Assembly (NCBI GenBank): GCA_003427395.1
Contig: BFEA01000031.1
Coordinates: 2,745,770 to 2,809,769 of the forward strand
DNA: 64,000 bases
Origin: Chara braunii
Taxonomy: Eukaryota > Plantae > Charophyceae
Reading direction: 5' to 3'
Positions 8,372-51,900 of this stretch are shown piece by piece; within the stretch, counting starts at the first letter, position 1, and each line of letters begins with the position of its first letter. The notes below the pieces were generated by a model. It worked only from the letters and a program-made list of their open reading frames with translations, was not told the origin of the DNA and ran no database searches. The position numbers and the translations under genes were made by a program.

Positions 8372-8778
8372 TTTTTTTTTTTTTTTTTTAACCATATTCT
8401 TCTCTCAATTTCACCTCACACTACCTACCTACCACTACTGCTACTTGTACGGGAACCCCGTAGCAGCCAGAACCGTGTTCACGAGAGAACATGCGGGGGC
8501 TGCTACCGACCTGCAGGTGGCCGATACCGGCCAGGGGACAGCCGGTAGCATCAGGGACCATCCCAACAGGACCAATCCCTGTGCCTCCCCTCAGGTCCCC
8601 TCCCCTACGAACATCAGCAGACTCTGCTTTAGTGCCGATAGGGGGATCCAGTGGTCTATCTCTTGGGTAGCGGGTGCCAAGTATGCCCAGGAAGGTGTAC
8701 GTGAGAACAATTGGGATTGAACCCACTACCTCCTGAATGCCACTTGCGAGCCTTACCAACTGAGCTAGGCCGCTGGAT
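8372..8778 (-). mobile_element. Full-length tRNA-derived SINE
   Basis: Head on - has an A box (TAGCTCAGTTGG) and a B box (GGTTCAATCCC) at about 8710-8772. Poly-T at 8372-8389. TSD CCCTCTGAGTTCT at 8360-8372 and 8779-8791. Confidence 0.9.
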
Positions 8779-8970: not shown

Positions 8971-10030
8971 TGTAACAAAAAGAAAGAAGGGTACTAAAAG
9001 GGACAAGGCAGAGATCCGACAGCCCATGACTCTGACAAGGCAGGCTTAGAATCCTTTTTCCTATTGGTCCAGGATCATGGCAGCCGGTTTACGGGGTCTG
9101 ATATTTCTGCTGTTGCCTCCAATTCACCCGGCCCAACTGGGTGACCAGGTTCAGCAGCATAAGCCACGGGAAAATCCGGTAAGGGATTTCCGAGGTCCAA
9201 GGCATCTATGGACCCTTCTGCCGCTAATAGGCCCATTGAGGCCCCCCTTCCAGCAGCAGTCCAGCCAGACTGTGCCCCNCATAGGGGTGGCCAGCATTGG
9301 GCCGTATCGGACGACGGAGGACGAAGGTAAAAATCCAAGGCCTGATAAGGCCTGTCCAGCGATTTACTGAGGCCGGCTATTTCAAGCAACCGTCTGGCAA
9401 GTAGAGTGTAGGTACTTTAGTCGGACGCCTCTTGAGCGTCGCATCCTGTATAAGCCATGCTTTTGTCCGTTTGTTGACGGATGGTATGCATGATTGTCAG
9501 CTTACGTTGACCTGAGTCTTCCTTTGATGTTTAACTTTTGATTGTCTTTGGGAAAAGGGACTAGGATTGATTGAGGTTTTCTTACGCTTGGAATATCACG
9601 TCCTAGTCGACCGACGTCGTTCCGATTCCTGGGAGATCAACGCCCCAGGGACGGGCGGCGTTCGGGTCCACTTGGCGTTTAACCATGCGTACCTATGCTA
9701 CAGCGAACGAGCAAACGCCCTCGGNCGNCNTACCTCTGCANTTGCATTATAAAAGCTTTCGCATGTGGGTCGGTAGCTCGGTAGGGATACGCCCCTAAGG
9801 GTGGTGACAGCCCCTTAGGGAAGGTAAGTTGTGCCCCGCGAGAACCTGTCCTGTCGTAGGGGACCGCGGGATGTACAGCTGGCGCACTTGGCCGGAGCGG
9901 TGAAGGGTTGACGCGGGTTACCGTGTCGTCCCCGAGTTGTCTCTAAAAAGGTGAAAGCCTAAGTTTCTCCTGCGTGACGCGGCCGGGAGGGCCCTCGCTC
10001 GCGCGGGGGCCCACGACTTTTTCGACTTGA
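8971..10030 (+). repeat. LTR-like non-coding repeat containing a conserved structured region; homologous to about 50050-51035 on -
   Basis: Purine tract at about 8947-8970 followed by TGTAAC. Shared blocks with the 50-51 kb copy include GTCCTAGTCGACC and CTGCGTGACGCGGCCGGGAGGG. Confidence 0.6.
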
Positions 10031-11619
10031 TGAGATGCGTTGCCAAGTTCTTTCATTCCACCGCATGCTGACTGCAAGCAAAGAAATGCGGACATCCCAA
10101 CCCTCAAGTAGAGTTAGGATCACACTGTTCTAGCGATGACGTCACTACCTTTCTAACTTTGGTGTGAATGTCATTTGCAAGTAGTCCGGCTACCACTATA
10201 CGAGTCAGTACTCGACTTGAACGACCGAATGTTGAATGCCTCATTAAGGTCAAGGATCCATTTTCAAATTTTGTTGGTCGCTTTGTCCTCCTGAGCAATG
10301 ATTACTTTTTCTGTTTCACGAGTGATGAAATACCAGTCCGCGATATAAAGATATTCCAGGCAATGCTTTAGTTACATTCTTTTGTCAACTAGCCTGATTA
10401 CCCCAGGCTTGCACTTCTTATGGTGCAACCCTATCCACGAGGGTAGTGCCAACACGCACTTTGTCCATAGCTAGTGAAAGCACGAACTGGGCTTCTTATG
10501 GCACCAGTTCTCCATTCGTCCGTGGCTCCTAAAACGGCCACTAGAAGGGTAAACTATAGTGGTCCTTCTTAACGTGAGCCGCCAAGAACTTAACGCCTTC
10601 TGTGAATAGCACACGTCCATCCCCTAGCAGGTGGTCTGGGATACCCCTCGTCCTCGCCCGAGCGAACCTCGGATCTCAGAAGTCGGGCTGGCTCCACCAC
10701 GACAGCATGGTATCCCCCCGCCTAAGCGGTCCACTCCGAGTCATTAACAGGGTCGGCCCCTAAGGCAACGAGCCCCCGCCTCAGATGCCCCGTAGGGAAA
10801 GGAAATGCACTTACTACAGCAGATGGTCAACCCTTTATCGCCTGACATCAAGGGCGAACCTAGACGAAGAAGGAGATCACAGAGAAGAAAAACATTCAGA
10901 TGGAAGGGCATAGACAAAGGGGGTCATTCAAGAAAGAATGAGTAACCTCGGGAAAAATTTATGTCCGATTCACTTCTTCCCCTTTGTGTGATCGCTCCGT
11001 TTCTCGTCGTCTACTGTCTTCCCATCCCTTCAGCACACACATAAGTGAGTGACAAAAAAACCATCATCATCCCTTCGCTTCCGCGCCATGATCAGATCTC
11101 TCCCTTTTTTTTTTTCTTTTTCTTTTTTCTTTTTCAGGCAGTTGTCGTCTTACCTGCACATCGGATCAGACAAACAAATCCAAAACCAACACGATGCAAA
11201 CCCATCCTCAAGTCAGGCTCTCATTCACACGCGCATGCACACATCTCCTCTACCTTTTCAATGAACGCTCAAAGAACAGGGTCAAGCAAGTGCGGGTTCA
11301 CACAGGCGTGAAGAGGACCGGGTCAGGCTAACTGACCTTGAGTGAAGCTGAACCAAAGATAGCAAACGGCCCACTCAAGAAAGCCGTATAAACCACACCC
11401 CAAATGAGAAGATCGTCGCAGTAAGCTGTCAGAAAAGTGATCCACACCACTCCCTCAAGGATCGCCCACTGACACACAACCCCCTCAGTATCTCAGCACT
11501 GTCACCACTTGCGACCAGTACCACTATGCCACCACTGTATCGAAGCATCGCCGCCGCAATATGCGGACAACACAACGTCAACACCACATAAAAACACACC
11601 CCCTCTTAATGACATCCCT

Positions 11620-11955
11620 CAAAATTGTCGTCGCCGCCGCGAAGACCGAACAGCATCTTCACACCGATGCTAAAAAAAATTGCTGCTGCCACAAAATTTT
11701 GGCAGCGCTTCCGCGTCGCCGCCAAAAAAGGTACACCTGCCGCCGCAAAATTTCGGCAGCGCGTCCACGTCACCGTAAAAAAAACAGCTGCCGCCGCAAA
11801 ATTTCTGCAGCGCTTCTGCACTACCGTCGAAAAAAACAGCTGCTGCCGCAAAATTTCGGCAGCGCTTTCGCGTTAGCACCGAAAATGCATAGCCGCCGCC
11901 GCAAAATTTCGGCGGTGCTTCCGCACTACCGTCGATAAACCTGTAGTCGCCGCCG
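11620..11955. repeat. Short tandem repeat with core GCCGCCGCAAAATTTCGGCAGCGCTTC
   Basis: About 6 degenerate copies, roughly 50 bp period. The core AAATTTCGGCAGCGCTTCC also occurs near 51812 and 52349. Confidence 0.8.
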
Positions 11956-13741: not shown

Positions 13742-13802
13742 AAAAATTTGGACTGTTTCTGGATTTATGCATGTCATCCTTGCACAGGGGCCATGTTAAT
13801 CT
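13742..13802 (-). pseudogene. U6: U6 snRNA 3'-half fragment
   Basis: - strand AGATTAACATGGCCCCTGTGCAAGGATGACATGCATAAATCCAGAAACAGTCCAAATTTTT matches the plant-type U6 ISL and 3' end with several substitutions. The 5' stem-loop and ACAGAGA box are absent. Confidence 0.9.
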
Positions 13803-14899
13803 CAGCGCGGCAGATCTCAGCTGCGAGATTTCAATGATCGCACGACCGAGATCGGTCGTGCCCGTTTGCCTTGGGCTGCTCCAAAAGGAGCTTTGCCCAG
13901 TAGGCTGGCATGTCAGATTCGTTCCCGGTATCTGCCGGGTGAGAGTTTGATGTGGTAACCTACTGAGCTAGCTCCTATCACGACAGTGATAGGAGCAGCT
14001 CTCCTATAAGAAGAGCTTGGCCCAGCCAATGTCCCCTCATTCCGCGGCCTTGCAGGCCCTGCCTGCCCATAGCCTTACAGGCCCGGCCTGCCTGCTTGTG
14101 GCCTTGCCAACCCTGCTTGTCTGCCTGTATGTGACCCTGCCGGCCCCGTCAACACACGGCCCTGCACGCTCAATTGGCCGAGTGATCTTGGCACCGGCCT
14201 TAGAATTAAACTCCCCTTCCTATTCCCCCTGCGTCGCGGCTTCATACCCGGCGCACACCTCTTTTTCGCTTACTTAGGCCCTGAATCGCGTGGCTTAACA
14301 GCCGCACGTCATTATTTTTGGTAAAACAGGTTTAACTTTAGTCTTTTCATGACCGCGCAACATCGCGGCCCTGTCGGAAACCATGGACGACAGGCCGCAC
14401 TGCCGACTCCCACTGTTTCAGACGAACGTCAATGACGTCACACGTCAACGACGTCCTACGTCATCGACGTCAGGCTTTAGGTTTCTTAGTTATTGGGTTG
14501 GTCTGAATAACCTTTGGCAACGTCAATCTCATCAAGTCTTTCAATCCAAGCAAGGGTCGGGCAGTGTCTGACCTTGAAAAACCCGGGCAGAAACCCTTCC
14601 AGGGGTTTCTGTCCCGGCAGCGGCATGCCTTCGTCGGGACGTGTGCTTTCGTCCTTTGCTTGGCCTTCGACTGCGACTGCGGCGCCACTCCGTTCTCCGT
14701 ACCTGCAACATGCGTTTTGCCATTACCACCTGTTAGTCATTTCACCTAGTACGATAACTCCGGATTTCATCTCGAAAAGGAAAGATCACTTTTGTGGCAT
14801 TTTCTCACCTCCATAGCTTTACCGATCAGGTAAGAATCCGTTAACTTTGTCTTACTCCCTTCCACGCTTTCGTACTTTCCTTTTCCTGTCACTCGGGTT

Positions 14900-47164: not shown

Positions 47165-48986
47165 TTTATTATTATTATTATTATTTTAATTAAAGACTCA
47201 TCAGTCCGTGGTAGGTGGGGGGTGATATGAGCATCCCCCTCTACTACTGACTGTATTGGTCACTCCATCTATTGGTGGGGAGCTGCACCTGCTGGAAAAC
47301 GGGTCCAACGTCCCAATGAGAACAAAGTTCATAACAAATGAGCATTATTGGGGCCTCTTCACCCAGAGTTGGGCGCCAGATCCTCTTACTATTTCTAGCG
47401 CTTCTATTAGACTCGTTTTCAATATGTTTCTTCATGACCATACCAAGAAATAGGGACCATTGCTCCTTCTGACGGTGGGAAGGGGTCAGGAACTCAGCCA
47501 AGGGACGCAGGGGGATTGAGGGATCCACTTCACGCCGTTAAAAATGATACTGTAGTTTCTTCTGATCTCCTCTCCTCCTGTCTCAGACTGACCATTCCAT
47601 TCCACCTCCGTTAAATTTCCCCCCTGTTTCCCCTCGAGCCAATCACTGCTGAAGTTTTGAATGTGTTACAAAATTTCTCTATTTCTGGAGAGATGTTGGA
47701 TTTTGTTCTTTGTGTGTTCCCATACAGTAATAATGTATGTCTGAATTTGTTGTTTAATGCTTTCTGTAAATTCTGGTCCATAAAGTCTAGCTCCTTCCAA
47801 CTCATAGGTACACCTTCTTCTCCAGATAGGCCGAAGAACTGTTCTTCTTCCCAGGATATAAAGATTTTGTGAGAAAGCATCATAGGGATCAGCTAACCAG
47901 TTTTCTAGCAAAATGGGTTTCCATCCCCATAGCCATTGAAATTTTGAGCCTAGATGATCCCATATGCGGTCCCACCATCTCCACAACCGAATGGACCCAG
48001 GACATTGAACAAAAATGGTGCTCAATGGTCTCAAGGATCTTTTTGCTTGGAAAGGCAGACTTGCAGACTTTACACCATGGTTCCGCTATGCCATTCCTTT
48101 CTAGTGAGGATTTAGCTGTCAGCCAATCATTGGTTGGGAGACATCTATGTGAGAATTGCCATTGAAGTGACGCTATCTTGGCAGGTTTGCATCTTTTAGT
48201 GCTGAACCATTTAATATGCTTCAATTCTCTTTTATGCAGATTGAGTTGATTCATCCATCTGGTTAATTTCCTGTCTTTTAGGTTTATTATGGGTCTTAGC
48301 ATTCTGTATGTGGATTTCACTAAGAGGTTATGTAGGGATCTAGTATCATTTCGTTTACGCTTCGCTTGAGACTCCCACTTCCATCTCCGGATCTAGCGGA
48401 AGGTGGGATATAGGTGGATCAGGCCGGAAAGCAAGCCATGTATTTTTGGTTTGTAGAACCCTGATTCTAAATATTTGGTCCCCTAAAACCCATCGAATTT
48501 TACTTGGTAATACGGGGAATACAGTGTTATCATCCTCGAGGTCGAAAATGATTACTAAAATCTTCCCATTCGGTTCTTTTATCAGAATGCTGCCAACTTC
48601 TTGGGTACAATCCTTGAACACTACCTAGTCATTTACCTTGATGTTACGACCTTGCCTGAGAATATGTATCCAGTTCAAAGGTATGAGCTCTATTATATTT
48701 TTCAGGTCGTCAGGGAATAGAGAACATATAGGAATTGCGTCTTCAAGTATCGATGTCACCTGGATTTTCTTTATATCTCTATTGTGTCTTAAGTTTGAGG
48801 CTATAGCTTCCATTATAATAACAAAACGGAATGGGGTCACTAAGTATCCTTGTCTAACTGATCTTATTAGTTCAATTGGAGGGGCTACATTCCCATTTAT
48901 CATTACTCTGGTTGTTGCCTTTTGATGCATAATCCCAGTCCAAATTTCATTTTTTTCCAAACATATATCGAGGAACATCCAATTAA
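47165..48986 (-). pseudogene. 3' half of a decayed L1/Tx1-like LINE (RT domains, zf-RVT, 3' UTR)
   Basis: RSVRQGYLVTP, SLFPDD, HRCLPTND, WCKVC...ETIEH and hairpin module at 47268-47314. Confidence 0.85.
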
Positions 48987-51900
48987 ACCACCAGTACCTA
49001 CCGGTTGTTAAGGCCCGTGGCTCAGGCTACCGGTAGCCCGGTCATTCCCGAGCCTCGGACTTTATTGCCGAGCCTTGGACAACCGGTAGGACACGACGAA
49101 AAAAAAAAAAACATACAACATTCTGNNNNNNNNNNNNNNNNNNNNNNNNNNNNNNNNNNNNNNNNNNNNNNNNNNNNNNNNNNNNNNNNNNNNNNNNNNN
49201 NNNNNNNNNNNNNNNNNNNNNNNNNNNNNNNNNNNNNNNNNNNNNNNNNNNNNNNNNNNNNNNNNNNNNNNNNNNNNNNNNNNNNNNNNNNNNNNNNNNN
49301 NNNNNNNNNNNNNNNNNNNNNNNNNNNNNNNNNNNNNNNNNNNNNNNNNNNNNNNNNNNNNNNNNNNNNNNNNNNNNNNNNNNNNNNNNNNNNNNNNNNN
49401 NNNNNNNNNNNNNNNNNNNNNNNNNNNNNNNNNNNNNNNNNNNNNNNNNNNNNNNNNNNNNNNNNNNNNNNNNNNNNNNNNNNNNNNNNNNNNNNNNNNN
49501 NNNNNNNNNNNNNNNNNNNNNNNNNNNNNNNNNNNNNNNNNNNNNNNNNNNNNNNNNNNNNNNNNNNNNNNNNNNNNNNNNNNNNNNNNNNNNNNNNNNN
49601 NNNNNNNNNNNNNNNNNNNNNNNNNNNNNNNNNNNNNNNNNNNNNNNNNNNNNNNNNNNNNNNNNNNNNNNNNNNNNNNNNNNNNNNNNNNNNNNNNNNN
49701 NNNNNNNNNNNNNNNNNNNNNNNNNNNNNNNNNNNNNNNNNNNNNNNNNNNNNNNNNNNNNNNNNNNNNNNNNNNNNNNNNNNNNNNNNNNNNNNNNNNN
49801 NNNNNNNNNNNNNNNNNNNNNNNNNNNNNNNNNNNNNNNNNNNNNNNNNNNNTTCTTCCCCCCCTTCCCCCGACCCGCCGCGCCTGTTTGTTTTAGGCTG
49901 TTACTTTTCATTTTCGTCGTCGTATTTTTTTTTTTGTTTTGGGCCCCGTTTTTTTGGGATTACCGATCGCACGCCGGTGGGTACCCCGCGCGACGCGGCG
50001 CGTTAACGGCCGTGTCGATGTCGAGCGCATCGGTCCAGCACCGCACTAGGGCAGCGCGGGACCCTCCCGGCCGCGTCACGCAGTAGTTGGATTTTAAATC
50101 CTTTGTCGCGAATATACATGGAGCTTCCGCAAGCCGCTCCGGCCGAGTGCGCCAGCCATACCTCTCGCGAGCCCCTACGACAGGATAGGGCCTACGCGAG
50201 GCACGACTTACCTCCACTTTACGGGAGTTGTCACCTCCCTTCGGTGGGCGTATCCTTGTCGAGCTACCAATCCACAGTACGAAAGCTAATCAGTTGCAAT
50301 CGCAGAGGGGAACCAGCCGAGGGCGTTTCTCGTTCGTTGTAGCATAGGGGATACGCGCGGTAGTACGCCTCTATCGGACCCGCACGCGAACAAACATCTT
50401 GGGGGGGCTGAGGTACCAAGCGTGGTTCATCGCTGGTCGACTAGGACACATCCCGCACACCACACGCACACCACTTTACAAACACAAAAATAAAACACAC
50501 CCACACACACGAAACGACACAACACAAACAACGCAACAACGCTCCTAGCCCCTCGGTAGCCAACCCATAACTTTCCAATGCGGAAATCAAATAGGCGTCG
50601 CGCGCAAGACTTAGTATAAAACCGCGCGGACGCAGGACTAACTCATATCGATTCGCAAATGCAAGCACTCGCAACGATGGCGTACTATGTAGTACCCATA
50701 CTCATGCGGTCTTCGTTAATCTCGAGGGTCGCATTCGACACTCAAGTGTCGGCTAACACGCGCCTTGAGGGTTAATCTCTCGACGCTGGACAATCGCCAT
50801 GCGCGGTTGAAAACCACACACCCTTTTCTGCACTCTGTGCACGCTGTGCACTCTGTACACAGTGGGTGGTACAGAGGTTCATACTTGTAGTGGCAGTCGT
50901 TTCCTTCGGCCCTGGGGATGAGTCTCACTCCAGGCCGTGGGCGAAAGTCAAGGGGTTTGACTTTGACGGCTGCCACGGACTACAACGTCCAACAATACAA
51001 CTCTAAAAAGCAAGGGTAAAAAGGGAATCCCCCTTTTTTCTCAAACACATAATTTGTTTGACCCTTATGCACAATTACCGTTGGCCTCTCAAACACTCAG
51101 GGCACTCATGAATATATGGGGGTTGGTTATATAGGACGATCACTTCTCACAGTCACAGTGAGGCTCCTCTCAGCCATATATGTATGTAATCGCAGGCAAT
51201 CACATCCAGAACCCGGACCACAATCATACCTGCAATCACAACAGAGATTCAACCAGAAATCCACACGCTACACGAGGTCAACTTCGACCATTTTCTGTAC
51301 TCACACCCCTTGCTTTAGCCGTGCAATCCTCAACCTCAGCGCAACCTCCCCGCAATAAAAATACTCAGTATCTTTGTTAAATGACCATTCAATAAAGTCT
51401 GGGTAAAAACACAACAAAACAAATAAACCACAGGGCTAAAGCTTTTAGGTTGAGTGGCAGGAGTGAATTGGAGTTGAATCGTAAACCGACGAATCGGCAA
51501 CCGACCTGTTATCAGTGATAACAAAAGAAGACTCTTAAGGGGTCAAGCTTAATCTAGTCCAATTCTTGAATCAGATCGATCAAGAAGACCTGTAACACAT
51601 GACAGGTCAATGCCCCAGGCTAAACCTATAAGTCCATGGAGAACAATCTCCATATCATGATCTCACCAAAATCATCCTAGTTAACTATATCTAAGCCTAC
51701 CTCTAAGCAAGTGCCCAAAGAAAGGTAGAGTCATGGCAAAATCTCACCTATTCAGAGTGGACTGCCAGAATCACCACCAGTCAAAATATAATCTATCTCT
51801 TCTAAATTAAAAAAATTTCGGCAGCGCTTCCCGTAGGAAAAGTGTCTTTCAAGAATTTACGTAAGTCAATATATGAAAGCAGAAATAATCTCTAACTCTG

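Follow-up and report, generated by a model that had tools for sequence, protein, structure and literature searches.

What has kept two stretches of non-coding DNA alike when they lie some distance apart, in opposite orientation, in the genome of Chara braunii? A preliminary description of the 64,000-nt stretch analysed here (the window) had read the pair as an undescribed large RNA structure of about 1 kb, carried by a mobile element, and had offered a ribozyme, an IRES-like element or a packaging/dimerisation domain as its possible function. The content of the window is eukaryotic, with microsatellites, runs of N and a single U6 fragment, and a profile of the conserved sequence run against it with nhmmer finds two copies only (E 7e-144 for copy 1, 1e-110 for copy 2).

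The relationship between the two copies, and their opposite orientation, are borne out by blastn, which matches 9658–9900 (+) to 50387–50134 (−) at 76% identity (E 2e-40) and 9967–9999 to 50086–50053, and by Smith-Waterman alignment, which joins 9528–9999 and 50497–50053 into one path with 327 of 490 columns identical. The homology spans 9528–10008 (+) and 50497–50053 (−), with an identity of 67% overall and 76% in the core, and the invariant blocks of the preliminary description appear in these alignments where it had placed them. Its extent of about 1 kb was overstated about two-fold. The best local alignment between 9000–9600 and 51100–50447 has a score of 11, which is at the level of shuffled sequences (12.0 ± 1.6) and below their mean; homology of 9045–9527 to the sequence upstream of copy 2 is rejected on this score, and the segment has no counterpart there. 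Single Ns occur within or near copy 1, at 9279 and at 9725–9741. Stop codons fall in all six frames of copy 1 and no frame is common to both copies, which rules out a coding explanation and agrees with the earlier view that no open reading frame accounts for the block.

The identity of the block becomes apparent from a third copy. When metagenome and WGS contigs were scanned for exact matches to one invariant block, eleven loci emerged, of which one is a true relative, contig BFBZ01010409.1 of assembly GCA_003427375.1 (referred to below as L002), and ten are chance matches. These ten metagenome contigs (L001 and L003–L011) share the 21-mer GCTGGCGCACTGGGCCGGAGC within bacterial genes of dehydrogenase type; in 8/10 it lies inside one G+C-rich reading frame (...GKTILVHGVLGSVSSLAAQLAHWAGATVIG...). 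A scan of viral contigs for further copies gave 0 matches; of two protein word searches with the spurious ORFs over the block as query, one returned only the ORF of L002 itself and the second nothing.

Positions 351–830 of L002 are 91% identical to 9528–10008 of the window over 482 nt, and the two are assigned to one family (family 1), with copy 2 representing another (family 2). L002 runs on beyond the point where copy 1 stops, through ...CGCGCGGGGCCGATGCGCTCGACA, then GG, then the 19-nt sequence TGGCGCCGTTGCCGGGGAT at 848–866. The LTR terminus of L002, ...GATGCGCTCGACA, is at position 845, its last letters being CTCGACA, with GCGCTCGACA preceding GG and TGGCGCCGTTGCCGGGGAT. The same terminus is found in copy 2: L002 825–845 matches 50039–50019 at 19/21 positions, with full identity over the last 15 nt, CCGATGCGCTCGACA.

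The 19-nt sequence is a primer site (PBS) for tRNA-Asp. It is letter for letter the primer site of the Ty3/gypsy element FIDEL, which is described as 'complementary to 3'-end of aspartic tRNA' in an element with a 5' UTR of 1,009 bp (PMC2844528), and it includes the core of the ATHILA PBS (bioRxiv 10.64898/2026.03.20.713144). Its reverse complement is the CCA-ended 3' fragment of plant tRNA-Asp, UUCGAUCCCCGGCAACGGCGCCA, a sequence that small-RNA papers name miR8175 and that extends from Arabidopsis and the grasses up to the green alga Coccomyxa. L002 therefore has the ending by which an LTR is recognised, CA followed after two bases (GG) by the PBS, and also the tRNA-Asp (or Asn) primer site TGGCGCCGTTGCC by which Athila/Tat elements are recognised.

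From the terminus and the PBS of L002, together with the terminus of copy 2, we conclude that the block forms the 3' end of an LTR, the sense strand of the element RNA being the + strand in copy 1. The order in L002, from LTR end to PBS, gives the same strand that had been favoured on the basis of a single loop, and the assignment to a mobile element also holds. In full, our reading is that the block constitutes the 3'-terminal 400–480 nt of the LTR in tRNA-Asp-primed LTR retrotransposons, probably of the Ty3/gypsy Tat/Athila type; we put its probability at roughly 0.78. The part of the LTR concerned is probably R-U5. Two LTR families have kept it in common, although the rest of their LTRs cannot be aligned.

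The window itself holds less of such an element. Searched throughout with up to three mismatches, it contains 0 matches to the PBS, at neither copy 1 nor copy 2; it has no paired direct LTRs flanking gag-pol, the two copies lying 40 kb from each other on opposite strands; and the larger ORFs tested carry no gypsy or copia domains. The coding region of the family is absent from the window and from L002. The LTR identity therefore rests on one contig outside the window, L002, and, given the lack of a PBS and of gypsy/copia domains, both copies are best taken as solo, 3' or rearranged LTR ends. In L002 about 880 nt follow the PBS with no convincing ORF, and this leader has no counterpart beside copy 1 or copy 2. 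Within it, at L002 848–900, the 3' half of the PBS together with AACGG pairs with an imperfect downstream repeat, CCGTTGTCCCTGG; the resulting 13–14-bp hairpin, known from this single sequence, would leave part of the primer site masked. A literature search on Chara LTRs found nothing specific.

The inverted arrangement of the two copies could also be that of the terminal repeats of a single DIRS-like element. Such repeats start near-identical, whereas the copies are 67–76% identical and 40 kb apart, and DIRS elements do not use a tRNA primer site of the kind present in L002. We reject this idea on divergence, distance and primer site, and regard it as scarcely credible. The features of the two LTR ends and of the sequence adjoining them are collected in Table 1.

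Table 1. Features of the two copies, read as LTR ends, and of the adjoining sequence (window positions).
Feature	Position	Strand	Basis
Copy 1, read as the last ~630 nt of the family 1 LTR, without the final 13 nt	9386–10011	+	Aligns with L002 ~142–832, 81–91%
Conserved block common to both families, with invariant blocks of up to 23 nt	9598–10008	+	blastn, Smith-Waterman, nhmmer
TATAAAAG, possible TATA box	9747–9754	+	Sequence; family 1 (copy 1, L002), absent in copy 2
Hairpin of 9 perfect pairs, CCCTAAGGG / CCCTTAGGG, loop GUGACAG (9804–9810)	9793–9820	+	Read from sequence
Best-supported hairpin, 21 pairs, invariant CCUGUCGUAGGGG at the tip	9824–9884	+	Pair counts, shuffle test
Invariant CTGCGTGACGCGGCCGGGAGGG near the LTR end, probably U5	9970–9991	+	Copy alignment
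Segment that in L002 (1–141) lies directly upstream of the block, here inverted and downstream	10012–10152	−	95%, 141 nt
Copy 2, read as the last ~480 nt of the family 2 LTR, to the canonical terminus ...CCGATGCGCTCGACA at 50019	50019–50497	−	Alignments to copy 1 and L002

The surroundings of copy 1 are rearranged. In L002 the sequence upstream of the block reads ...GAAAAAGTTGTG/ACAG. In the window copy 1 stops 13 nt short of the terminus, at the 10011/10012 junction, and there meets its own upstream neighbour in inverted form, so that the last ~630 nt of its LTR are inverted relative to both the 10012–10152 segment and the U6 fragment. The junction could have arisen by inversion in place or by recombination between oppositely oriented copies, or it could be a scaffold error. 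The U6 snRNA match is a partial one (13742–13803 (−); 48.6 bits, 62 nt of the 105-nt model), on the same strand as the 10012–10152 segment and about 4.4 kb from the far edge of the block (~9386). Five tandem units of 51–54 nt, of the AAAATTTCGGCAGCGC... type, occupy 11671–11953, a region that may belong to the same LTR.

Other repeats lie nearby. On the minus strand at 8680–8760 is a tRNA-like head, GGCCTAGCTCAGTTGG...GGTTCAATCCC, which by eye has the look of a tRNA-derived SINE; ARAGORN calls no tRNA there, or anywhere in the window. Fragments resembling LINE-type reverse transcriptases are found at 1025–2041 (−) and 47889–48978 (−), the latter immediately beyond the N gap that lies downstream of copy 2; Pfam gives a weak zf-RVT match for 1025–2041 and none for 48625–48978. 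They appear to be unrelated to the LTR block.

The preliminary description had emphasised stems that change in sequence and keep their pairing, and comparison of copy 1, copy 2 and L002 supports this in part. The strongest case is the hairpin at 9824–9884. Of its pairs 16 are invariant, two are compensatory (U-A to C-G and C-G to U-A), three are changed on one side and none is broken in the three sequences, which are ∼70% identical. A different kind of conservation is seen in the hairpin at 9793–9820, in which the two families carry the same 7-nt loop, GUGACAR, on stems of different make-up: the counterpart in copy 2 has the stem GGGAG/CTCCC plus CCAC/GTGG and the loop GUGACAA. RNAalifold applied to the two window copies gives 96 pairs, 11 of them compensatory, on the sense strand, whereas the antisense strand has 88 pairs, of which 5 are compensatory.

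Shuffling of alignment columns, which keeps the gap and identity patterns of the three sequences, points to the same strand. For the whole block the sense strand has a z value of −1.87 (7/200 shuffles as good) and the antisense strand −0.07. Local tests, made on eight overlapping sub-windows and both strands, with z values uncorrected for multiple testing, single out two regions, 9598–9699 (sense z −3.03, 2/300; antisense +0.4) and 9824–9892 (sense z −2.54, 3/300; antisense −0.55); antisense values across the tested regions lie between −0.6 and +0.9. The folding energies of single sequences vary, with z −2.5 for L002 421–900, which includes the PBS region, and −0.64 for copy 2 (antisense +1.55). 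Compensatory pairs over the whole block number 7, compared with 5.1 ± 2.1 in the shuffles, and are not above chance. The claim of covariation finds some support in these two sub-regions, one of which includes the hairpin at 9824–9884, on the sense strand only, and the covariation is weaker than had been described. Support for a few hairpins on the sense strand is moderate, and falls short of proof for a fold of the entire 400 nt.

These figures bear directly on a reading in which the block is conserved as DNA, as promoter or enhancer motifs, poly(A) signals and integrase ends, with hairpins that are incidental to G+C-rich sequence. The chance-level number of compensatory pairs over the whole block and the ordinary folding energy of copy 2 (z −0.64) are in its favour; the invariant blocks, 13–23 nt long, resemble protein-binding DNA or RNA motifs, and there is a TATA-like motif at 9747–9754. 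Incidental hairpins, however, do not readily explain a structural signal that is specific to one strand, with G-U pairs accepted on the sense strand alone, nor a hairpin (9824–9884) whose pairs are all unbroken across three sequences that are ∼70% identical, nor the retention of the GUGACAR loop on wholly different stems. We consider conservation mainly as DNA unlikely.

The main idea of the preliminary description was a free-standing structured RNA gene or ribozyme, carried as cargo by a mobile element. A size of ∼400 nt, invariant single-stranded blocks between stems and the lack of a match among catalogued RNAs would all suit such a gene. The Rfam comparison that it had proposed was made: at the gathering score the window has no match except the unrelated U6 fragment, and at E ≤ 10 copy 1, copy 2 and L002 have no relevant match to any family, including hammerhead, HDV-like, group I/II, RNase P/MRP and SRP RNAs. 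Ribozyme families are thus among those that fail to match even at this threshold, and there is no sign of cleavage motifs. No pol III terminator is conserved, a T5 run following copy 1 only. The position of the block is fixed at the LTR terminus, adjoining the PBS. Judged by eye, a telomerase RNA was dropped on finding no conserved template-like motif, and group I/II cores and a PBS within the block were likewise weighed by eye only and dropped. An independent RNA gene is, in our view, very improbable: in L002 the block makes up the end of an LTR and abuts a tRNA-Asp PBS. As to the three functions first offered, nothing favours a ribozyme or an IRES, whereas a leader domain of the packaging/dimerisation type comes close to what we consider the best reading.

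If the block is the end of an LTR, known retrovirus and Ty biology suggests how its parts might work, and the roles that follow, as promoter, R, U5 and leader, are assigned on that basis. A core promoter and start site may lie within the block, with TATAAAAG as a putative TATA box in family 1 only. This would be followed by R, with two or three hairpins, and by a putative U5 of ∼80 nt, the boundaries of both being guessed; the A-rich variable stretch near 9935–9968 is a possible poly(A) site between them. As DNA, the last bases of the block would be the end to which integrase attaches. In the genomic transcript, where it would form the 5' end, the block would aid primer placement and strand transfer as RNA, and it may also take part in dimerisation or packaging.

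A more specific role is suggested by the loop at 9804–9810, GUGACAG, which is exactly complementary to the tRNA-Asp(GUC) anticodon loop, CUGUCAC, as taken from human isodecoders (PMC7515703). The match is only a lead, because there were several conserved loops and tRNA regions to choose from, and the chance of such a post hoc match is roughly 0.1–0.2. On this tentative and rather improbable proposal, the block would be a docking platform for the primer tRNA, the GUGACAR loop kissing the anticodon loop of tRNA-Asp while the PBS binds its 3' end, and would constitute a portable module exchanged or retained by unrelated LTR families. If docking were true, it would provide a plant-lineage counterpart of the contact between the HIV-1 A-rich loop and tRNA-Lys3.

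Structured RNA around R-U5 and the leader is known from retroviruses and LTR retrotransposons, and includes the TAR, poly(A) and U5-PBS hairpins of HIV-1 and the 5' leader structures of Ty1 and Ty3. Work on cis-acting RNA structures by the primer site is extensive for retroviruses and for the Ty elements of yeast and, to our knowledge, has hardly touched plant-lineage retrotransposons. The Chara block opens no new RNA class. Its interest is that a 400-nt module kept between LTR families that are otherwise unalignable marks the part of the LTR that is seen by selection, and that it could serve as a seed in searches to annotate LTR ends across the repeat-rich genome of Chara.

Among plant elements the closest likeness is to ATHILA and FIDEL, with which L002 shares an identical tRNA-Asp PBS, a spacer of 2 nt between this site and the LTR terminus, and a long leader that lacks ORFs. 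The terminus differs, being CTCGACA in L002 and the block compared with TATCA in the ATHILA elements of Brassicaceae, and the likeness to Athila/Tat is known from non-coding sequence alone. The sequence of the block is unrelated to that of the retrovirus and Ty leaders and lies outside Rfam; it precedes the PBS, in LTRs that belong to a charophyte alga, and its function is predicted. In its organisation, however, it resembles those leaders: it is placed at the LTR end by a tRNA primer site, it has hairpins on the sense strand and conserved loops, and it is far better conserved than the rest of its LTR. We conclude that, as a retroelement control region, the block is of an ordinary kind.
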